Positions 2,556 through 54,795 of a stretch of 64,000 nt of DNA are shown here, piece by piece. Both the position numbers and the translations under genes were made by a program. The notes beneath the pieces were generated by a model. The model had not been told where the DNA came from, did not search any database, and saw only the letters and a program-made list of their open reading frames with translations. The stretch lies in sequence record KU521356.1; one strand, given 5' to 3'. Positions within the stretch are counted from its first letter, which is position 1. Each line of letters starts with the position of its first letter.

Positions 2556-3071
2556 ATGTTCGAAATTAAATTTTCTAAAAAAGAACAATTCCCTGGCCGT
2601 GGTCACTGCATCGAACTTTATGGTGATTATGTCACCGAGCGTGTATGGCATGCAGTGAAACAAATGGTTGAATGTAACATTACCAATCACGAGTTTTATA
2701 AGGCAAAAGAAGGTTTCTGTGTATTCTTCCAAGGTGGGCATGATAACCCTCATGGGAAATGGATCCTTCTGGAATTCTGGGTAGACGACATCGAGAAGAC
2801 TCGTGAGTTCGTTCGTCTCTTGACCATCACTATTAATCGAGTATTGACGGAGCGTTTTACTCAAATCTGCGTTAACCCTAATCAAATGGGTTATGCAGAT
2901 GGGGCAGGTGCATATACTGTACTTGGCGAAATCCATAAAGAAACTGGATGTCGTGTTAATTGGGGTAGTCCGACTACACCCATTACCTTCTATCCAGAAA
3001 ATAACTTGGAACATCGTAAAGTACTCGACTTGTGTGAAACCTTCGAACTCCCAGTAACTAAATGGGTATAA
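2556..3071 (+). CDS. hypothetical early protein
   Basis: 171 aa, AAGGA SD, directly after a promoter cassette. Confidence 0.85.
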   Translation: MFEIKFSKKEQFPGRGHCIELYGDYVTERVWHAVKQMVECNITNHEFYKAKEGFCVFFQGGHDNPHGKWILLEFWVDDIEKTREFVRLLTITINRVLTERFTQICVNPNQMGYADGAGAYTVLGEIHKETGCRVNWGSPTTPITFYPENNLEHRKVLDLCETFELPVTKWV

Positions 3072-3088
3072 TTAGAGGATAAAGTACC

Positions 3089-3325
3089 ATGTACATCGTT
3101 ATCCACAGAGACGAGTCTGAAAGACATGAATTGACTGTAGGTGATCCTAAAGATCTTATCGCGATCTTAGTCATTCTGGAGAATAGTGATAAAGTCATTG
3201 AATATAAGGTTATCGATTCGGATGTTGGTGTAATCAAGGACTTTAGATACTCATTTGGTTGGGGTAACGGGTTCTTCACTAAAAATGCAAAAGATAATTT
3301 TAACTGGAATCAATCGAGGAAATAA
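3089..3325 (+). CDS. hypothetical early protein
   Basis: 78 aa, GAGGA SD. Confidence 0.75.
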   Translation: MYIVIHRDESERHELTVGDPKDLIAILVILENSDKVIEYKVIDSDVGVIKDFRYSFGWGNGFFTKNAKDNFNWNQSRK

Positions 3326-3327
3326 TA

Positions 3328-3540
3328 ATGGCTAACAGTAAAATCAGTGGCGAAGCTGTAATGAAATATCTACGTTCTCGAAATGACCACGTGGATTTTA
3401 TGCGAGATAAACTGTCGGTTTACATTGAAAATGATGAAGTGGTAGTTAAGATTATAGATACTACTTCAGGTGGTTCTGCAACACACCACTCAGGTTATGA
3501 TGTAAACAACTTTGAAAGAACGTATGGTCAAACTAACTAA
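3328..3540 (+). CDS. hypothetical early protein
   Basis: 70 aa, GAGGA SD. Confidence 0.75.
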   Translation: MANSKISGEAVMKYLRSRNDHVDFMRDKLSVYIENDEVVVKIIDTTSGGSATHHSGYDVNNFERTYGQTN

Positions 3541-3571
3541 ATAAATTAGTAACACTTATTGGCGACATACA

Positions 3572-3597
3572 CCCTCCCTTCGGGGAGGGCTTTATTT
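3572..3597 (+). terminator. intrinsic terminator
   Basis: CCCTCC-CTTCG-GGAGGG followed by CTTTATTTT. Confidence 0.8.
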
Positions 3598-3641
3598 TCA
3601 ATATAGACATATTTTTTTAATACATTAGTTGGAGTTTAAAA

Positions 3642-3974
3642 ATGTTTAATAAAAATTTTATCAATGGTATTCAAATTTTTGTTGCCGCAACTACTGTTGC
3701 TACAACTATTGTTAAGTTAGTCGAATCATACAACAAATTAAATGAAGAAAAATCGGCTAACGATGTATGTAAGAAAATCCATATGGAAATCCATAAATTA
3801 ACTAGCCTGTTTATTGAACAAGATATACCTAATGAAGAACGCTGTGTTAGGTTACGTAAAACTGTTGATACATTAGTTAATAAACACTGCTCTAAATTAA
3901 CTGGCCGCCGGCGACTCAGGGCTGTTGCAGAAATCACTCGACATGTAGATGACTATTGTCGTCTGTGGAAATGA
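3642..3974 (+). CDS. hypothetical protein with hydrophobic N-terminus
   Basis: 110 aa, GGAG SD; N-terminal IQIFVAATTVATTIV. Confidence 0.75.
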   Translation: MFNKNFINGIQIFVAATTVATTIVKLVESYNKLNEEKSANDVCKKIHMEIHKLTSLFIEQDIPNEERCVRLRKTVDTLVNKHCSKLTGRRRLRAVAEITRHVDDYCRLWK

Positions 3975-3975
3975 A

Positions 3976-4047
3976 ATAATACATTCAAACCATTTTAACC
4001 AGTATATCACAACAGTGTAATTAAACCTATTAAATCAGTAAAAAGGA
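3976..4047 (+). promoter_or_regulatory. diverged early promoter/leader cassette
   Basis: ATAATACATTCAAACCATTTTAA is identical to 2476-2498; TATATCAC at 4003-4010; GTAAAAAGGA at 4038-4047. Confidence 0.8.
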
Positions 4048-4055
4048 ATCAAACT

Positions 4056-4316
4056 ATGACAACTTTCCTGACTTTTAAATCTGACGAAGACTTGGAGAAA
4101 GAAGCAATCCGTCGTGCACGTGCTATCATGGGTTTCCGTGGTGACCGTGATGCAGCTACTCGTCAGGTATGCATCAATCCTGTACGAGGTAAGGATTACC
4201 GTAACTGGTTATCCCATAGCGCTACCTGGAAAGATGGTAACATTGTTGTTGATGAAGATAGTCTCATTGAGCTAGCCCGTGCCATCATTGATGAGACCTA
4301 CCTGCACGATATGTAA
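4056..4316 (+). CDS. hypothetical early protein
   Basis: 86 aa, AAGGA SD. Confidence 0.8.
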   Translation: MTTFLTFKSDEDLEKEAIRRARAIMGFRGDRDAATRQVCINPVRGKDYRNWLSHSATWKDGNIVVDEDSLIELARAIIDETYLHDM

Positions 4317-4343
4317 TAACTACTACTCCCTTATTCAAACATA

Positions 4344-4396
4344 TTTAAACAGTATATTACTAACTTGATATTTAACCTTCAATTAATGTAAAAAGG
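4344..4396 (+). repeat. early promoter/leader cassette, copy 2
   Basis: 53/53 identical to 2493-2545; TATATTAC at 4353-4360. Confidence 0.95.
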
Positions 4397-4406
4397 GACT
4401 TTAAAA

Positions 4407-4556
4407 ATGAAAGCATTCGCACTAGTGGTTATTGGTTTGACTTTTGGTGGACTGTTTGTAAACGCTAAGTTTGAAGAGCAAACTATTTCTAATGAAACTG
4501 TTATCCTCGGTCATCGTATCGGTCCCAATGGTCAAGAAATGCTCGTAACTAAATAG
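4407..4556 (+). CDS. small (49 aa) signal-peptide-like protein, absent from the ORF track
   Basis: MKAFALVVIGLTFGGLFVNAKFEEQTISNETVILGHRIGPNGQEMLVTK; first gene after the promoter cassette, AAGGGA SD. Confidence 0.75.
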   Translation: MKAFALVVIGLTFGGLFVNAKFEEQTISNETVILGHRIGPNGQEMLVTK

Positions 4557-4566
4557 AGAAATAAAA

Positions 4567-4908
4567 ATGGAAAAGTCCGTAGCAGTTAAAGTAATCGACA
4601 ACATGTGCCGTCCGAATATCGTTGCTCGCATGAATGGTAAACTGGTCTACCATGCTCGTAATGTAAAAATAGTAGAAGGTAAGGATCTATGGCCGAACCG
4701 CACTGACGTAGATGATGTTCGTGTACTGGTCGGTGAAGCCTTCCGTAACGGTGAATGGGTACCCATGCGCAGTTCTAGCCTGGTTAACGTAGATGCTGTT
4801 ACCGGTGTATACGAAACCCTCAACTCTGTTTACATTGCTCCGGATCTTCTGGGAAGTCTCTCGGTGGGTCCTGATATCTTCAATGATGATGCAACTTTGA
4901 AAGGATAA
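4567..4908 (+). CDS. hypothetical early protein
   Basis: 113 aa, host-like codon usage. Confidence 0.8.
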   Translation: MEKSVAVKVIDNMCRPNIVARMNGKLVYHARNVKIVEGKDLWPNRTDVDDVRVLVGEAFRNGEWVPMRSSSLVNVDAVTGVYETLNSVYIAPDLLGSLSVGPDIFNDDATLKG

Positions 4909-4913
4909 TCAAT

Positions 4914-5312
4914 ATGAACTTCATCAAAGAAAACGCACTTGGTCTTGGTCTTATTGCACTGGCAGTTGGCGCAACAGCCGTTGCTGCCATCCTCGCGGTC
5001 AAAGCTACCGTAAAGGAAGACGGTCAGGCTGTAGCCGAACAGATCGAAAGCAGTATCTCTGATATTCTTATCGATAAGATCTCCACCTACCGTAACAGTG
5101 AACAACATCGCAAGCTGGTAAATCATCTTCGTCGAGATCACGAGTTGGATGTCGCAGAGTTCATCTCACGGACCCAATTGGACATCGCGCTCAACATTCT
5201 TCCAGAGGTAGAAGTACTTCTGGAATCTCATCGTGATCAGCTGACCGTGGAAGAGTTCGATCGACTGGTTGCAAATCTCCAACATTTCGTGCAACGGATC
5301 ATCACTAAGTGA
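4914..5312 (+). CDS. hypothetical protein with N-terminal membrane anchor
   Basis: 132 aa; ALGLGLIALAVGATAVAAILAV hydrophobic helix; AAGGA SD. Confidence 0.8.
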   Translation: MNFIKENALGLGLIALAVGATAVAAILAVKATVKEDGQAVAEQIESSISDILIDKISTYRNSEQHRKLVNHLRRDHELDVAEFISRTQLDIALNILPEVEVLLESHRDQLTVEEFDRLVANLQHFVQRIITK

Positions 5313-5482
5313 AAACCAAAATAGTGGTAGGTTTTCTTGCAGTTCTAATGGGACTAACTACTGCTGGTAGTGAGTTCTATTATGAACTGACCAAACCCGA
5401 AGGTAAGGTTTCGAAGGAATGGTGTCAACAGCCGGCTAAACCGAAATGTACTATGTTTGTATTTACTATTACTGAGGAATAA
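5309..5482 (+). CDS. small (57 aa) exported or membrane peptide, absent from the ORF track
   Basis: GTG start in a 4-nt overlap with the upstream gene end; MKTKIVVGFLAVLMGLTTAGSEFYYELTKPEGKVSKEWCQQPAKPKCTMFVFTITEE. Confidence 0.65.
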   Translation: MKTKIVVGFLAVLMGLTTAGSEFYYELTKPEGKVSKEWCQQPAKPKCTMFVFTITEE

Positions 5483-5485
5483 TAA

Positions 5486-5893
5486 ATGGATAGTCGTCTG
5501 TCGAGAGTCTTCCAAAACGTGGACCATGTGTTCACCCAAGAACAGACCAATGAACTGGTCAATCGTCGTAATGAAGACATGTTGTTGACTGTACAGGTTG
5601 ATGACATGTTGGCATTGATCCATAACGACCATGTTAAGTACAGGGACCTAGTAAAGATTATCATCGAGGATACTATCGCCTTCATAAAAGCAGAGCGTCT
5701 CTCGCTCATTGGTATAGGTCTTTTCAACAAGATGGTCTATGTTGATCAAGGCCCGGATGCTGTTGGCTTTTTAGAATATATTAAGGTAGCTGAGTACACA
5801 TCCACTCACGTGGATGAGTCCAATGCATGGGTGAATATGTATCGCAATAAGATAAAGACTTTCATGCTACCAATTCTCTCTCAGCTTCTGTGA
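5486..5893 (+). CDS. hypothetical early protein
   Basis: 135 aa, GAGGA SD. Confidence 0.8.
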   Translation: MDSRLSRVFQNVDHVFTQEQTNELVNRRNEDMLLTVQVDDMLALIHNDHVKYRDLVKIIIEDTIAFIKAERLSLIGIGLFNKMVYVDQGPDAVGFLEYIKVAEYTSTHVDESNAWVNMYRNKIKTFMLPILSQLL

Positions 5894-47262: not shown

Positions 47263-49143
47263 ATGGCTGTTAACGAAAACGAAATCGGCACCGTTCAAAC
47301 TCAAGCTACTGCTCCTGCTCCGCAACCCACTGCACAGCGTCAAGCTCAACGTCCTACTGGCGCGCCTGGGTCTACTACTGGCATTAACCATCTAATGCGT
47401 CGCTCTGGTCGACTAGATGGCTCTGATGCTCGTTCAGCAGATGCCCTACAAGTATTCACTAAAGTAAAAGAAGAAGCAATCCGCCATCAGGACCTACCTG
47501 ATGACTTCGATATCCATCGTTTCGATCGTGATGCGCAACAAGTTGGTATGGCTGGTCTACTCATTGTTAAACTAGCTAAAGATATCAATGGTTCCATGAA
47601 GGCATTCGTTCGTACTCTAGTACTCGATAACCTACCTGGTACTCGCATCCGTCCCCGTACCCACAAAATCAACAATGGTCTAACTGATGACATCATTGAA
47701 GAGAAGGTACTACCGCGTGATGTATTCACTGCTCAATACTGGAGCAAGATCGGCGAGTTCCTACGGAACCGTTACAACATCCCTGGTCTAGAAGTACTAT
47801 CTGCCGGTCCACGTGCAGTGTATGCTGACTTCGACTTCAAAGATGAACTAGCTGTTAAGAACCTACTAGTTGAATCCGTTAATATCTGTGAAGATGCTAT
47901 TGCGCGTCGTAACAATGAGACTCCGTTCTCTATTGCGACCCACATCAAAGCAGAAAACGAACAGCTTACCTGCAATCTAGACTACAATGGTATTCCGGTT
48001 AAAGATAGCTGTGGTAATCCGATCCGTTCTGACCTGGTCATCTCCACTAGCCGTGGTAAGAAAACCAACGTACCTGAGAACGAGTTCTATGATACCGATA
48101 GCCAGCTAAACCAAGTTAGTCTATTCGTAGATCTACATTGGACTCCGACCACTGGCCAGCAACAAGGCATGTTTGGCGTAACTCTACCTGGTGCAGTTCT
48201 ACCTCCGCAGTTCACTCCTTACATCGTTATTACTGACGTTCGTAAGGCGTCCTGGATCCAAGCATGGACTCTAGAAATGTGGCTGTTCGCGCTTGGTAAC
48301 GCGTATCGTGCAACTGCATCTCAGGCATGGGCTCGTACTCTAATGCCGAAGATCGCTACTAGTAAGATGCGTGATATTGGTGCACTTGGTTATTACTCAG
48401 AGCTAGGTAAAGCGATTGAAACTCGCACCGAAGCATTCATGGCAGACGACAGCAACTTCGTAATGCTAATGAACAAGATGGTTAACCAGAACCCTGCATT
48501 CCAGATCGATATCGATCCAATGGGCGACAACTCAGCTATTGAGCAAGTCATCCTAGATGCAGCTGGTGGCGTAAACCAAGCTCGTGCAGTTAGCCTGATC
48601 TTCCAAGCTCTAACTAACCTATACGGCACTGATTTCCGTCAGTTCTATAACCTAGCTGAAGCTGGTCCGATTATCTTTGACAACCATCATGAAGTAGACC
48701 TCGGTCACTACACTGATGAGCATGGCGAACTAAGCGACCGTCGTGATCTTGACGTTCTAGGTGCCATGAACATGTCTGAAGGTAATGACCAAGAGTGGAA
48801 GACCTGGTATGCTACTCAGGTAGGTAATGACCACATTGTGCGTCGTATGAATAACAGTAAAGGCTTCGACAAGATGTACCTAGGTAACGTTACCTATACT
48901 GGTCGTGCTCGTCGTCTAACCTTTAACCCGAAATTCATCACCGCAATGGATGCCGCAGCAGCAGCCGCTGGTGTAACTGTAACCATGGAAAACCTAATTA
49001 CCAACTTCGGTCAACAGCGCTTCGCTGGTTACACCGGTATGGGTAACATGGCTGTTTCTGGTAGTGCACAAGTTGGTATGGCTGGCAGCATGGGTCAAAC
49101 TTACGGCGCTCCTTCCTATAATGCACCGGGTACCTGGTACTAA
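47263..49143 (+). CDS. chmA: chimallin, major phage nuclear-shell protein (gp54-like)
   Basis: 626 aa; disordered A/P/Q/T N-terminus, G/M/A-rich C-tail ending APGTWY; directly before the nvRNAP subunit, as in nucleus-forming phages. Confidence 0.9.
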
Positions 49144-49149
49144 TAGGAA

Positions 49150-49470
49150 ATACCTCGGTAGATAGGGATGTTAAATAAGTAACATCCCGATTCTAATACT
49201 GCGACCCTGGTTCACTTCGGTGATAACGGTTAGGAGTAGGTTCCGTGAAGTAATCGACTAGTGGACTTAGTCTAGGTCGACCTATCACTACACGAGGATG
49301 ATAGATCACTTAACCGAAAGGAGTTACTCAAAAGGTGACGTGTGATCAAAAACTACAATGGATGGTAAATGATACTAGTGCCGGTATGCTACAGAGAAGA
49401 GCGGAGGTTAAGCTTTGTAGATGACGCTAGGATCGGGCCAGGCTCCGTTGGTGGTCCATTGTAAAAACTG
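49150..49470 (+). ncRNA. candidate structured non-coding RNA or structured chmA 3' extension
   Basis: No ORF of 60 aa or more; at least 6 predicted helices, UUCG and GAAA tetraloops, long-range 49354-49362/49455-49463 pairing; terminator follows. Confidence 0.6.
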
Positions 49471-49475
49471 ATATA

Positions 49476-49510
49476 GCGGCTCCTTCGGGGGCCGCTTATA
49501 TCTCCTTTTT
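49476..49510 (+). terminator. intrinsic terminator
   Basis: GCGGCTCC-TTCG-GGGGCCGC followed by TTATATCTCCTTTTTTT. Confidence 0.85.
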
Positions 49511-49537
49511 TTGTTAATCGATAAATAGGAGTTTGGT

Positions 49538-50674
49538 ATGGGTCTTTATGCCAAAGTTGTTGATCATAATGAAGTTCATGATCAATTTACGGGTAAACGA
49601 ATTTATGCCAATGATTACAATACGAGTAACTCAGATGAGAAAGAAGAATTTGATAGGCATTTCTATTCTCATTTCCAAGATTCAGAAGCAATTGAAAGTA
49701 GTGTAAGCTGTGATTGTCGAGCAATCGAAGACGCACATAAACTCGGAGTAATCTGTGATATTTGTAATACTCCAGTTGTCAATACTTCTAGCCGCCCTAT
49801 CGAACCATCAATGTGGGTTCGTACACCAAAACACGTACGTAGCCTAATTAACCCACGTTTAATCATTATGCTAACCGGATATCTAGTAACTAAAGAATTC
49901 GATTTCTTAGCATATCTAACTGATACTTCTTATCGATACGATGTGGAATCTATTGGTTCTAAAGAAACACGCAGAAAAGTAGATAGGCTACTGCATCGAG
50001 GATTTGAAAGAGGATTAAATCACTTCATTGATAATTTCAATGAGATCTTCCAATTCCTACTAGATGCAAATATTATTTCTAATAATAAATCCGAATTCGC
50101 TCAATTCGTTGCTCAGAATAAAGATAAGTTATTCCCTAAATATTTACCAGTTCCTTCTAAACTCTGTTTCGTAGCAGAATCAACCACATCTGGTACTTAC
50201 TTAGATAAACCAATTGAAGCAGCAATTGATGCTACCTTAACCTTCGCTAGTATTGATGCATCATCTGTACCACTTAGTCCAATTAAAGCTCAGAATAGGA
50301 CTATGCGAGGACTAAGACTATATGGCCAGTTCTACGAGATCTACGCAAAATCACGAATTGCTCAAAAGCCTGGTCTTGCTCGGCGTCACATGTTTGGTGC
50401 TCGTCTCAACGCTACGGCACGTGCAGTAATCACTTCTATTAGTGACCCGCATGATTATGATGAACTACATATCCCTTGGGGGGTAGGTTGTCAATTATTA
50501 AAGTATCATCTAACCAATAAACTAAAAGCAAAGTTTAACATGACAACTCGTGAAGCATTCTCATTTGTATATGAGAATGTACTTCAATATAACCAAATCA
50601 TTGCAGATCTATTTAAAGAGCTAATTGCAGAAGCAGCCCCTTATAAAGGGATGGGTTGTACTTTTCACCGAAAT
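49538..50674 (+). CDS. non-virion RNA polymerase beta'-like catalytic subunit, exon 1 (379 codons)
   Basis: Zn-finger SCDC..CDIC, ARAVITS motif; ends ..CTFHRN at a U (50674). Spliced product is 488 aa. Confidence 0.9.
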
Positions 50675-51918
50675 TAATCTATTAAGTTAAAGCGCTACAG
50701 ATTCTGGGTGTGGTAACCAGGAATCTCTAATGAGGAATTATGAATGAAGAAATAAGATGGCGTAAAATACCTGGTTTCAATAATTACGAAGTCAGTGATC
50801 ATGGTCAAGTTAGGAACCTTAAAGGCGAATTAATCTCACAACACGAGAATAAGACAACTAAAGGTACTTACCTTACCGTTAACATCCACAATGATGACGG
50901 TATTAGAAAGATTCGTTATGTTCATCGTTTTGTGTGCATGGCGTTTCATGGGTTACCTGAAAACTTTAATGAGTTGGACGTTAACCACAAAGATACCATT
51001 AAGCATAATAATCATTACCTTAACCTAGAGTGGGAAACTCGTAGCGGTAATGTTAAGCATGCATTTATAACCGGTGCCAATAAACATGCACTCGCTGTTA
51101 AATGTACAAACATTCTGACTGGTGAAGTAAATAACTTCATCTCGATGAAAGAAGTAGCCGAGTTCCTAGAGCTTGGTCACAATAAAGGGTTACATGTCGT
51201 ATTGGGTCATTTAGTTAAACCATTCAGAGGTAAATATGTATTCGAAGTAAGTGGGGATTATCACCCACAGAAGCGTAAGAATGCAATTGAAGTTTATTGC
51301 ATAGACTTCAAGACCAACACCTTTGGACGATATGTAAACCTAACGCAGTTACAACTTAGAACCGGGTTAATTAAAGGGTCAGTGCAGGACATTTTAAAGA
51401 AACCAGATCTAAGATTATTCAACGGTGTTGTTATCTGTAGGGTCGATGATAAGGAACGGCTATTCGAATACGTTTCTAACCTAACCCAAGAAATGGTTAA
51501 CAAATCCATTGATGATTACAATAGATACAAAGCGCGTAAAGAGAAGCTACATACCACCTAAGCAATTAGTGTAGCGACTTAACTTAATATGGGTTTCCTT
51601 GTATCAGAAATGATACTCGACAAAACTTCTTGAATTGCTGGAACAACTCGTTAGGTCAGTTAGCTACAATAGTTCCGAAAGGTTCTATGAATGCTTAAGA
51701 ATAACTGAATAGAGTCAATCAGCAGCTAAGATCCTAACCCGAAAGGTATGGATAAAGTTCAACGACTAGTGCATTGGCACGTAGGGTCCAAGTGGACTCG
51801 AAGTGGGAAGCACCTTACTGGGTAAAGCCAAAGGTGAAGATATAGTCTCAACGTCTAGCGAGAGCTAGAGCTGCACGTAATGGTGCGGGTTAGCCTAACG
51901 AACTAACTGAAGATATTG
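50675..51918 (+). mobile_element. group I intron 1 (1244 nt) with HNH endonuclease
   Basis: U at the 5' splice site, terminal G 51918; P/Q/R/S elements AATTGCTGGAA, AATCAGCAG, GTTCAACGACTA, AAGATATAGTCT; IGS GTTTC (51593-51597) pairs exon GAAAT; removal restores RN|PTLQR. Confidence 0.9.
50740..51561 (+). CDS. intron-encoded NUMOD4-HNH homing endonuclease 1
   Basis: 273 aa; WRKIPGFNNYEVSDHGQVRN (NUMOD4), YVHRFVCMAF, DVNHKDTIKHNNHYLNLEW; GAGGA SD. Confidence 0.92.
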   Translation: MNEEIRWRKIPGFNNYEVSDHGQVRNLKGELISQHENKTTKGTYLTVNIHNDDGIRKIRYVHRFVCMAFHGLPENFNELDVNHKDTIKHNNHYLNLEWETRSGNVKHAFITGANKHALAVKCTNILTGEVNNFISMKEVAEFLELGHNKGLHVVLGHLVKPFRGKYVFEVSGDYHPQKRKNAIEVYCIDFKTNTFGRYVNLTQLQLRTGLIKGSVQDILKKPDLRLFNGVVICRVDDKERLFEYVSNLTQEMVNKSIDDYNRYKARKEKLHTT

Positions 51919-52026
51919 CCAACGCTTCAACGTGGATCTACGCAGCAGTTCTTTATTACTAAAGTAAAAGATGACATTAATGATAATTCTATCAGCATGT
52001 CAGTTTTATGCTTGAAAGCGCCTAAT
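51919..52026 (+). CDS. nvRNAP catalytic subunit, exon 2 (36-codon micro-exon, absent from the ORF track)
   Basis: PTLQRGSTQQFFITKVKDDINDNSISMSVLCLKAPN; matches the beta' region from RxPTLHR to the N of NADFDGD. Confidence 0.92.
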
Positions 52027-53398
52027 GGACAATTGAATAACTAAATAAGGGTAAAAACAATGGAACAAAACGGAGTAGTGTCCGTCTTTGATCCGGCTTC
52101 ATTTAAAATTGAATGGCGGGATATTCCTGGATACTCAGCATATGAAGCTAGTAACCTAGGAACAATTCGTCATAAGCGGTTAAATAGAATATGTAATTTC
52201 TTCCTTACTAAAACATCGATTGGGACATATCTCAATATTGGTGCAAAAAATGATGAAAAAACATCTAAGAGTAAGGGAGTTCATATATTAATCTGTTTAG
52301 CTTTCCATGGTCCATCACCTGGACCAGATTATGAAGTCAATCATAAAGACGGCAACAAACATAATAATCTACCATCTAATTTGGAGTGGATGACTCGTGG
52401 TGAAAACTTAGAACATGCTTACAAAAATGGATTAAGAAAAGAAAATAGACGAGTAATTGCAACTGATGTTACCACTGGTGAAAAGACTACTTATTACTCG
52501 ATGAGTGAACTTGCTCGGGCATTAGGAGTTAATAAAAATACGGTTTGGGTTATTATACGTGATCATAAGACTAAGCCGTATAGAAATAGATTCACATTTG
52601 AATTTATTACCGGTGAGACTAAGATTGCTGATCGAGATAGTACCAAGACAGTTTATGTTTTAGACTATAAGACTAAGACATTACATGTGTTTCATAACTT
52701 AGCTGAAATGGAACTTGCACTAGGTACTAAACGTAATAAAGCCTATTACCATCTAGTTAGAGGTAGTAAAGAAATCATGGATGGTTTGGTATTCTCATAT
52801 ACCGCCAATCCTGAAGATTTCCCTAAATACACTCAAAAAGAAATTGAAGCCTCATTTGGAAAACCTAGTAATGGAAAAGGTACTCCAATTGAAGTAACTG
52901 ACACCATCTTGAACACTACCAAAGTGTATCCGAGTATTCCACACTTTGCAAGAGATGTCGGTATTAAGCATCCGAATACTGTTCGAAGAGCAATCTTTGA
53001 AAAGAATGGGGTGCTTGATAAATACCTTATTAAGTTAATCAAGTCTAGTTCCCCCAATGAGTAATCGTTGGGTTGAGTTCTCTCTAATTGCTGGGATATC
53101 CTGTTAAACTAATCTACCACTGCGAGTCGAAAGACAAAGCCAAGGTTTGAAAAAGATTAGGTAGGGCCAATCAGCAGCCAAGCTCCGTAACATTCCATTT
53201 AGGAATAGGAGAAGGTTCAACGACTATTACGGTATCAGGTGCACCGGTCCTAGAAATAGGATGTAGGGTCAAGTGACTCGAAATGGGAGACACCCCACTC
53301 CGAAAGGAAGGGTGAAGATATAGTCTGGTCTTCTAGCGAGAGCTAGAGCTGCACGTAATGGTGCGGGTATCAATTAACGACTGATACTGAACAATACG
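52027..53398 (+). mobile_element. group I intron 2 (1372 nt) with HNH endonuclease
   Basis: Exon ends in U (52026), terminal G 53398; AATTGCTGGGA, AATCAGCAG, GTTCAACGACTA, AAGATATAGTCT; IGS GTTGGGT (53067-53073) pairs GCCTAAT; removal restores N|ADFDGD. Confidence 0.93.
52060..53064 (+). CDS. intron-encoded NUMOD4-HNH homing endonuclease 2
   Basis: 334 aa; EWRDIPGYSAYEASNLGTIR, GVHILICLAF, EVNHKDGNKHNNLPSNLEW; NUMOD1/IENR1-like C-terminal segments (TTYYSMSELARALGV, VYPSIPHFARDVGI). Confidence 0.93.
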   Translation: MEQNGVVSVFDPASFKIEWRDIPGYSAYEASNLGTIRHKRLNRICNFFLTKTSIGTYLNIGAKNDEKTSKSKGVHILICLAFHGPSPGPDYEVNHKDGNKHNNLPSNLEWMTRGENLEHAYKNGLRKENRRVIATDVTTGEKTTYYSMSELARALGVNKNTVWVIIRDHKTKPYRNRFTFEFITGETKIADRDSTKTVYVLDYKTKTLHVFHNLAEMELALGTKRNKAYYHLVRGSKEIMDGLVFSYTANPEDFPKYTQKEIEASFGKPSNGKGTPIEVTDTILNTTKVYPSIPHFARDVGIKHPNTVRRAIFEKNGVLDKYLIKLIKSSSPNE

Positions 53399-53620
53399 GC
53401 TGACTTTGACGGCGATCAATTGAATCTTACGTTAATGCCTGATGTGTATCTAACTAAAGCAACTGAACGCATTGCACCACATACATGGGTTCTATCTATT
53501 GATGAACCACATGAAATCTCAGGTAACCTTGAATTACAGGGTCCTGTTGTAGAAACAATTATTAACTGGGCACATGAGAAGTATTTACCGCCATTAGAAG
53601 AATGGCTAAAAGCAAAATAA
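53399..53620 (+). CDS. nvRNAP catalytic subunit, exon 3 (73 codons plus stop)
   Basis: Begins ADFDGDQLNLTL, the catalytic Mg2+-binding motif of multisubunit RNAPs. Confidence 0.93.
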   Translation, partial: ADFDGDQLNLTLMPDVYLTKATERIAPHTWVLSIDEPHEISGNLELQGPVVETIINWAHEKYLPPLEEWLKAK

Positions 53621-53623
53621 ATT

Positions 53624-53652
53624 AATAGGGGAGTTAGACTCCCCTATTATTT
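53624..53652 (+). terminator. terminator after the RNAP subunit
   Basis: AATAGGGGAG-TTAGA-CTCCCCTATT. Confidence 0.85.
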
Positions 53653-53668
53653 CTTTGAGGCTGGTAGC

Positions 53669-54052
53669 ATGCATGATTTAGTCATCTATTGGAAAGCTCA
53701 TGATGGTTACTACATACAAGATGAATATGGCGAACATCCTGTAACTTTCCAATTCGCAGAAATTAATTGGAATTTCACCGGAGCTTATGAATACGGTGGT
53801 TCTGAATTGATTGATGATCACTTAAGGTTTGGTATAGATTTCAAAGTACGTGATATTGAATGGCAAATTAGGTTTGATTTAGACGGTAAATTTACTCTGT
53901 ACAATATGTCAAATAATGATCGGGATGATACCTTTGTAATTCCAGCTACTTCAAAATTTGCCCAATTCTTTAAAAAGACAGGCAAACATGTAGTTACTAA
54001 TGAAGTTATCACTATCCCAATTAATTGCTCTTTTGATAAGCAAATTTATTAA
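53669..54052 (+). CDS. hypothetical protein
   Basis: 127 aa, GAGG SD. Confidence 0.75.
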   Translation: MHDLVIYWKAHDGYYIQDEYGEHPVTFQFAEINWNFTGAYEYGGSELIDDHLRFGIDFKVRDIEWQIRFDLDGKFTLYNMSNNDRDDTFVIPATSKFAQFFKKTGKHVVTNEVITIPINCSFDKQIY

Positions 54053-54612: not shown

Positions 54613-54795
54613 ATGTCTAATATTCGTGAAATTATTCGACGTAACCCGGAACGTTTATCACAAGCCGAACGAGATGAACGTGAAGCCAGATCGGTAGCTA
54701 TATTAACTGGGAGATATATCACTCGTGGGAATGGTGATGTAGTGGTAAACAGAAGGTTTGTCGATGCATATGTCGAAATGATCTCTAAGCTTTAA
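54613..54795 (+). CDS. 60-aa Arg-rich protein of an inserted cassette
   Basis: AAGGGG SD and its own TATATCAC promoter core (54574-54581). Confidence 0.7.
   Translation: MSNIREIIRRNPERLSQAERDEREARSVAILTGRYITRGNGDVVVNRRFVDAYVEMISKL

Follow-up and report, generated by a model that had tools for sequence, protein, structure and literature searches.

Several group I introns in one phage gene, inserted at conserved codons, form a well-known pattern seen in Twort, T-even phages and the Bastillevirinae. In the Staphylococcus phage Twort, nrdE reportedly carries two group I introns (Landthaler et al. 2002), and orf142 reportedly carries three, with exon skipping (Landthaler and Shub 1999). Introns of the Bastillevirinae are described in PMC11878797. 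Here we analyse a comparable arrangement in Pseudomonas phage KTN4 (KU521356.1, genus Phikzvirus), the first 64 kb of which form the window, that is, the whole stretch of DNA examined. The element under study is a gene split into three exons by two introns which, judged by sequence identity, is the homologue of phiKZ gp55, the N-terminal beta'-like subunit of the non-virion RNA polymerase (nvRNAP). As in Twort and the other multi-intron phages, several group I introns, some with HNH open reading frames (ORFs), lie close together in conserved codons of one essential gene. The phage families, hosts and target genes are different, and Phikzvirus gp55 further departs from those systems in having three alternative sites inside a stretch of 126 nucleotides (nt) around the RNA polymerase active site, with occupancy that varies between strains of one genus.

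The phiKZ gp55/gp56 intron was predicted by Mesyanzhinov et al. 2002, which is cited together with Ceyssens et al. 2014 in PMC11512511 and PMC10914365, in the former for introns in phiKZ gp55. It has the same insertion point as KTN4 intron 2 (between N415 and A416), contains the same HNH ORF and is 99.1% identical to it over 1372 nt (phiKZ 49168-50539), but phiKZ lacks the other KTN4 intron, 108 nt upstream. In PhiPA3, the HNH protein gp210 is encoded in a group I intron beside the catalytic Asp codons of the virion RNA polymerase beta-like gene (PMC11620839); this protein nicks the phiKZ allele, in which the intron is absent, and confers a competitive advantage on PhiPA3 (Birkholz et al. 2024, PMC11620839). 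KTN4 resembles this case in combining group I introns with predicted I-HmuI-like nicking HNH proteins beside the catalytic aspartate codons of a multisubunit RNA polymerase gene, in a nucleus-forming Pseudomonas jumbo phage. The two differ in that the PhiPA3 intron is single and lies in a virion, beta-like gene, whereas the KTN4 gene is non-virion and beta'-like, and in that nicking and competition were demonstrated experimentally for PhiPA3, whereas the KTN4 elements are known from sequence alone.

Intron 2 of KTN4 is already known. For intron 1 and the three-site hotspot no description was found in the searchable literature, though both are present in public genomes; the KTN4 paper notes only that KTN4 differs from phiKZ in "predicted HNH-endonucleases" (PMC4908380). 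An initial annotation of this stretch had stated that phiKZ carries only the second intron, and this proved correct, with phiKZ continuous at site 1 and nearly identical to KTN4 across intron 2. Intron 1 is indeed extra relative to phiKZ, but it is less novel than had been supposed, as it is in GenBank in eight phages with an HNH gene and in nine further records without an ORF.

We put at about 0.9 the probability that two group I self-splicing introns, independent but related and each with an HNH gene, interrupt the KTN4 gp55 gene, and that these are selfish mobile homing introns at an active-site hotspot. This reading draws on ribozyme homology, exact exon continuity, empty-site alleles, endonuclease domains and a population polymorphism with conversion-like tracts.

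Reconstruction of the gp55 gene from three exons

Exon 1 (49538-50674, + strand; 379 codons) is preceded by an AGGAG ribosome-binding site (49527-49531, +) and ends in FHRN, with U at the 5' splice site. Directly after it, the first codon of intron 1 is an in-frame TAA (50675-50677). The micro-exon (51919-52026, +; 108 nt, 36 codons, PTLQRGSTQQFFITKVKDDINDNSISMSVLCLKAPN) runs from PTLQR to LKAPN and is 108 nt long in 12 of the 12 relatives examined. Exon 3 (53399-53620, +) starts with ADFDGDQLN and consists of 73 codons and a stop (53618-53620). The introns of 1244 and 1372 nt, 2616 nt in total, are both in phase 0; each is preceded by T (50674 and 52026) and ends in G (51918 and 53398). Joining 379, 36 and 73 codons gives a product of 488 amino acids (55.7 kDa), with RNPTLQR at residues 378-384 and DFDGD at 417-421. 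Every coordinate and junction given in the initial annotation was exact.

The three exon translations were each searched against the PDB and were 100% identical to phiKZ gp55 (7OGP chain A, which has a 20-residue tag), matching residues 21-399, 400-435 and 436-508 respectively. The matches are contiguous, with neither gap nor overlap at either junction, which confirms the exon boundaries as strongly as sequence allows and goes far beyond what chance would give. Exon identity was taken from the PDB search because Pfam matched no family on exon 1 or exon 3; exon 1 also matched the beta' subunit of the AR9 nvRNAP (7S00_d, E 5.6e-10). With 100% identity over 488 residues in three pieces, the product falls with multisubunit RNA polymerase beta' subunits of the phiKZ gp55 type, in agreement with its earlier identification as a beta'-like catalytic subunit. 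The catalytic Mg-binding aspartates D417, D419 and D421 are all encoded by exon 3. This numbering agrees with PMC8287921, which places the Mg-binding loop of the phiKZ gp55 double-psi beta-barrel at 417-DFDGD-421.

Incompletely spliced RNAs encode products without the catalytic aspartates, as had been proposed. Unspliced RNA stops at the TAA after N379 (43.4 kDa), and RNA from which only intron 1 has been removed reads APNGQLNN before a stop, giving 420 amino acids (47.9 kDa). Native phiKZ gp55 has been reported as 56 kDa (PMC4666361), a size that agrees with the spliced form, whereas the annotated phiKZ ORF would give a product of 47.9 kDa.

A 4.4-kb region holding the gene is 100% identical to KU521356.1 with its coordinates unchanged, and GenBank lists five unrelated coding sequences (CDSs) across it. 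KTN4_074, the "putative non-virion RNA polymerase subunit", is exon 1 only, entered as a complete CDS of 379 amino acids, and KTN4_077 (53435-53620), a hypothetical protein of 61 amino acids, is part of exon 3 only. The micro-exon is without annotation, KTN4_075 and KTN4_076, which are the intron ORFs, are labelled hypothetical proteins, and neither intron is annotated. Similar mis-annotation of the gp55 locus was observed in most related records; in KTN4 and most of its relatives, gp55 is entered as two or three separate, unrelated "hypothetical proteins", and the micro-exon is missing.

Two related ribozymes with HNH genes

At the curated threshold for Rfam RF00028 (gathering threshold 50 bits), the only hits in the 64-kb window were the two introns, both spanning model positions 1-253. 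Intron 1 (50675-51918, +; 1244 nt) lies between N379 and P380 inside RNPTLQR, starts with TAA and ends at G51918; its ribozyme core (P2-P9; 51575-51870, +) is a full-length model match at 87.5 bits (E 5e-22). Intron 2 (52027-53398, +; 1372 nt), the known phiKZ gp56 intron, lies between N415 and A416, directly before ADFDGD, and ends at G53398; its core (53027-53348, +) is likewise a full-length match at 74.7 bits (E 3.5e-18). The boundaries of intron 2 can be slid by 1 nt, with intron and exon 3 both beginning with G. The boundary chosen is the canonical one (U at -1, terminal G), and the ambiguity is removed because the introns of KEN49 and T2P start with C. The two KTN4 cores are 81.5% identical over 135 nt. 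Together with the contiguous 7OGP_A match, the RF00028 matches bear out the anatomy of three exons and two group I introns.

In both introns the core is downstream of the ORF and the guide sequence directly upstream of the core. The internal guide of intron 1 (51590-51597, +) is UGG followed by GUUUC: P1 is formed by GUUUC (51593-51597) with GAAAU at the end of exon 1, including G51593.U50674, and P10 by UGG (51590-51592) with the first bases of the micro-exon, CCA. Exon skipping, in which exon 1 would be joined in frame to exon 3 (452 amino acids), was considered and found to be unsupported, the UGG of this guide pairing with the micro-exon CCA and not with the GCU of exon 3. In intron 2 the guide GUUGGG (53067-53072, +) is complementary to CCUAAU at the end of the micro-exon, with G53067.U52026 among the pairs. 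All site-1 introns share GGUUUC, and at the third site, described below, the guide in fnug and KEN49 is GUCUCC opposite GGAGAU. The guide changes with the insertion site at all three sites and so behaves as a real P1 must; the P1 registers (guide/exon pairing) were read by eye.

Covariation was assessed in an alignment of 10 cores that represent three insertion sites and several lineages, with 68-82% identity from one lineage to another. RNAalifold returned 61 pairs, 33 of them with two-sided compensatory changes, and 95.9% of cells were canonical; the structure was derived from the same alignment, and the covariation is supportive and non-independent. Hairpins between the P7 5' strand and the P3 3' strand in the alignment suggest a placement in subgroup IA. 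The core score, the U, guide and terminal G, the compensatory changes, and the restored frame with empty alleles were all found as for a group I intron.

The ORFs sit in the extended P1 loops of the two introns. In intron 1 a long-range helix of 20 nt (arms 50680-50699 and 51570-51589, +; 90% complementary, 870 nt apart) extends P1 and closes the loop holding the ORF. The corresponding helix of intron 2 has 18 nt (arms 52033-52050 and 53025-53042, +; 89% complementary, 974 nt apart), closes the ORF loop and covers the AAGG Shine-Dalgarno of the HNH ORF. If folded in this way, the helix may sequester the HNH ribosome-binding site and so limit endonuclease translation from the folded precursor. 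A comparable limiting of endonuclease translation has been described for T4 intron ORFs.

The intron 1 ORF, KTN4_075 (50740-51561, +), has a GAGGA ribosome-binding site (50732-50736, +) and encodes an I-HmuI-like HNH protein of 273 amino acids, with Pfam matches to NUMOD4 (36.5 bits) and HNH_3 (31.8 bits). The intron 2 ORF, KTN4_076 (52060-53064, +), encodes the phiKZ gp56 homologue of 334 amino acids, with three NUMOD1 (101 bits), HNH_3 (52.4 bits) and NUMOD4. Both ORFs are intact and have plausible ribosome-binding sites, the proteins are 34% identical to each other, and each is of the I-HmuI-like HNH type with NUMOD modules and encoded inside an intron. The DNA polymerase introns of SPO1, SP82 and Bastille encode the nicking HNH endonucleases I-HmuI and I-BasI (1U3E). 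KTN4_075 and KTN4_076 match I-HmuI (1U3E) at E 1.9e-6 and E 7.8e-10 respectively, align with its N-terminal NUMOD4-HNH catalytic part and keep the NHKD..N motif; this similarity is low and confined to ~110 residues, with different C-terminal DNA-binding parts.

Copies of intron 1 that are 98.4-99.9% identical occur in fnug, ANB1, OMKO1, fMGyn-Pae01 and SL2, and a second site-1 lineage, with an HNH protein 73% identical, occurs in Churi and vB_PA32_GUMS. An unannotated stretch of phiKZ (NC_004629.1, 186376-186509) is 82% identical to the 3' part of the intron 1 ribozyme. It is probably the intron near gp179, and the match suggests that the genus carries a related ribozyme family in several genes.

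In the mechanism that we propose, a single precursor RNA would start in a promoter region that follows the chimallin terminator and end at the 53623-53649 terminator. Each ribozyme guide would pair with its own upstream exon end (GUUUC with GAAAU, GUUGGG with CCUAAU), free guanosine would cleave after the U, and the freed exon end would then attack after the terminal G of the intron. Removal of both introns would yield an mRNA for the 55.7-kDa catalytic subunit with its NADFDGD loop, and all other RNA forms, stopping before the aspartates, would give catalytically dead products. The endonucleases would nick intron-less gp55 alleles in co-infecting Phikzvirus genomes, and repair would copy in the intron together with flanking exon markers by gene conversion. 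The introns sit in the most conserved and least mutable codons of gp55, where imprecise loss would be lethal. Splicing in KTN4 itself, the activity and target of the endonucleases, and homing are the steps that we infer.

Several observations weigh against this explanation. No KTN4 RNA data were found in the searchable literature, and a long-read transcriptome of phiKZ gave no splicing evidence for the predicted gp56, gp72 and gp179 introns under the study conditions (PMC10914365). Because the phiKZ long reads are without splicing, the protein-level data for intron 2 are only indirect, namely the 56-kDa native subunit and the recombinant fused construct used in the structure. The P10 of intron 2 amounts to only ~1 base pair. 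Furthermore, the base equivalent to 53067 is A (AUUGGG) in PA7, T2P, LC, Churi, SL2 and GUMS, which places an A-U pair at the splice site instead of the near-universal G.U wobble and is unusual for group I introns; either the P1 register for intron 2 is imperfect or such variants splice less well. KTN4_075 and KTN4_076 are, in addition, putative homing endonucleases with predicted targets.

Intron occupancy and conversion-like tracts in Phikzvirus

The survey of intron occupancy suggested in the initial annotation was run on 47 Phikzvirus records, with 12 loci examined by exon anchors, site 1 by an empty-site probe, and sites 2 and 3 by a probe of the joined flanks, and occupancy was found to be variable. 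Site 1, after N379, was occupied in 18 of the 47 records: nine had an ORF-less insert (276-350 nt) and nine, from eight phages, a long or HNH-bearing one. It was empty in phiKZ and 28 others. Site 2, after N415, held an ORF-less insert in 17 and a long or HNH-bearing insert in 23 of the 47. A third site, after D421 and so directly after ADFDGD, was empty in most records. An empty site 2 combined with a break after ADFDGD was found in fnug, OMKO1, PA7 (JX233784 and NC_042060), Brmt and W10-2, and MRostami-2023c is probably a seventh such record. No record (0/47) had sites 2 and 3 both empty. HNH-bearing introns at both sites 1 and 2 were confined to KTN4, fMGyn-Pae01 and ANB1 (3/47). In more distant relatives, including PhiPA3, 201phi2-1, PA1C, Psa21 and D6, the gp55 gene is uninterrupted.

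At site 3, fnug (MT133560.1) carries an insert of 1524 nt with an HNH ORF (locus coordinates ~4120-5645). Within the group with an empty site 2 the content of the site-3 insert is known for fnug alone, and the length of the OMKO1 locus agrees with that of fnug. The fnug intron has the ribozyme core first and an ORF of 366 amino acids (HNH_3, NUMOD1 and I-HmuI_NUMOD) downstream, a layout opposite to that of introns 1 and 2. KEN49 (vB_Pae3705-KEN49, PP456877.1) has three Rfam-confirmed introns in its gp55 gene, with inserts of 350, 1373 and 388 nt, the last being ORF-less and at site 3; the Rfam matches lie at 2735-3034, 4192-4513 and 4561-4864 (locus coordinates; region 2733-4950). The exon between its introns 2 and 3 has 18 nt and encodes exactly ADFDGD. 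The HNH gene in KEN49 intron 2 has a premature stop. Among phages that are ~95-99% identical in this region, each intron was found present, ORF-less or absent in nearly every combination, a distribution typical of selfish mobile DNA.

Site 1 of phiKZ is an uninterrupted empty allele, with caccgaaat followed directly by ccaacgctt and the gp55 ORF running on through the micro-exon. It is identical to the joined KTN4 exons over 24 nt before and 30 nt after the insertion point, the single difference nearby being a synonymous one (GGG to GGA) 25 nt upstream, and this near-identity makes it a predicted target of the KTN4 site-1 endonuclease. In the T2P group (T2P, U1B, U5, phi9_PA9 and Wadjak 1) the last exon 1 base at the empty site 1 is C instead of T, and CCGACC replaces CCAACG just downstream, all changes being silent. 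This allele could be resistant to the site-1 endonuclease or be the footprint of a past conversion.

The 62 residues around the sites are invariant across the 12 loci, and silent differences in the DNA are mosaic and clustered at the sites. The spliced gene of fnug departs from that of KTN4 at 6 positions within the first 1200 nt, against 34 within the final 264 nt, where the differences start beside sites 2 and 3; exon DNA is ~13% diverged downstream of site 3 and 0.5% upstream. The bases directly on either side of site 3 are of the fnug type in KEN49 as well. Such clustering in fnug and KEN49 is the pattern expected of co-conversion during homing from a diverged donor and, as a sequence pattern, is consistent with it. 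These clustered silent changes, the presence/absence polymorphism and the nearly identical intron copies shared by different strains point indirectly to homing.

ORF-less derivatives are known at every site. Those at site 2 (480-498 nt) retain an in-frame HNH remnant of 37 amino acids, which indicates that the endonuclease ORF was lost through internal deletion. Depositors have annotated these remnants as "HNH homing endonuclease" (T2P locus 1717-1830, GUMS locus 2910-3023 and L007 locus 2017-2130).

Alternative explanations and the surrounding locus

A stronger claim, compatible with selfish homing introns, is that the endonucleases damage the gp55 gene of intron-less co-infecting relatives while the occupied site immunises the carrier. 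In type of element and class of gene KTN4 agrees with the PhiPA3 gp210 case, phiKZ site 1 is a predicted target, 47 of the 47 Phikzvirus records carry an intron at site 2 or site 3, and the empty-site alleles with silent changes near the site (T2P group at site 1, fnug at site 2) resemble resistance alleles. The claim is an analogy from matching anatomy, however, and homing would be expected to be efficient among such similar strains, so that the outcome may be intron spread and not the killing of competitors; homing alone also explains the fixation at sites 2 and 3. We therefore regard weaponised introns as a possibility to be held tentatively. Similarly speculative is the broader picture in which the 126 nt of the catalytic barrel (N379 to D421), with three intron sites and at least five ribozyme/endonuclease lineages, would be a battleground in an ongoing arms race among co-infecting strains. 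Each intron would there immunise its carrier's polymerase gene and attack those of rivals, and the double-armed state of KTN4 would perhaps be the most aggressive genotype.

The initial annotation had proposed that later transcription depends on two sequential splicing events acting as a possible timing checkpoint, such that removal of both introns delays or gates active nvRNAP and times the switch to middle and late transcription. Active gp55 does logically require removal of both introns, and nvRNAP, itself a product of early genes, transcribes genes expressed later (PMC4666361 and PMC8287921). Splicing of T4 group I introns depends on translation and growth state (Sandegren and Sjoberg 2007, as cited in PMC10914365). 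The helix over the ribosome-binding site of the intron 2 ORF could also be cited in its favour, but it bears on control of the endonuclease gene and not of gp55. Against a checkpoint, the number of introns in near-identical phages ranges from one to three, ORFs may be present or missing, and almost all combinations occur, all of them in viable isolates. This presence/absence polymorphism implies that neither intron is needed for the phage programme: phiKZ has no intron 1 and fnug no intron 2, so no particular intron is required and any delay would be a by-product. No regulatory element was found in the sequence, and the order implied by "sequential" has no basis in two independent ribozymes, where nothing imposes it. 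A regulatory role is accordingly improbable, and the two-intron anatomy leaves the view of phage transcription timing unchanged.

That the gene is truly split or decayed, its exon pieces being separate or dead and its introns mere relics that are not spliced, is suggested by the separate GenBank CDSs for exon 1 and part of exon 3 and by the phiKZ long-read study without spliced reads (PMC10914365), but we give it almost no credence and reject the split-protein or pseudogene reading, as the micro-exon has neither start codon nor ribosome-binding site, the catalytic loop would be severed from its beta-strands, both ribozymes are full-length and high-scoring with compensatory changes, the exon protein sequence is perfectly conserved in 12 strains whose DNA carries silent changes, KTN4 is viable and has been propagated (PMC4908380) and native phiKZ gp55 is 56 kDa.

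With two selfish homing introns as the preferred explanation, the main value of the locus lies in the correction of its annotation and in a natural strain panel for homing and intron competition. The correct gene model, a catalytic subunit of 488 amino acids, is needed for gene knockdown and proteomics on therapy-candidate phages. Closely related Phikzvirus strains are easily grown and differ only in which of the three sites is occupied and in endonuclease integrity, forming a panel in which homing, co-conversion, intron loss and the "intron as weapon" idea can be addressed within one genus.

The upstream neighbour of gp55 is the gene for chimallin, the phage-nucleus shell protein (47263-49143; PF25677, 1122 bits). 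A hairpin 3' of that gene (49472-49512, +; ATAGCGGCTCC-TTCG-GGGGCCGCTTAT, then TTTTTTT), read by eye and not called by the terminator scan, is likely the upstream boundary of the gp55 transcription unit. Over 49100-53800, the sigma-70 promoter scan gave fewer promoter-like sites than in shuffled sequence, and the only + strand terminator called by the terminator scan was the hairpin and T-run after exon 3, directly 3' of the gene (53623-53649, +). Nothing in the two scans suggests separate transcription units inside the introns. Permissive, sub-threshold Rfam matches to the small RNAs sraA and CrcZ on the terminator hairpin were rejected as chance.

At the 3' end of gp55 in PA7, T2P, GUMS and Churi, a non-intron insertion of ~340 nt follows EEWL, and the C-terminus EEWLKAK is replaced by EEWLKS. 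The insertion holds a small ORF like that at 54613-54795 of the window (MSNIREIIRRNPE..), apparently relocated from the position after gp58.

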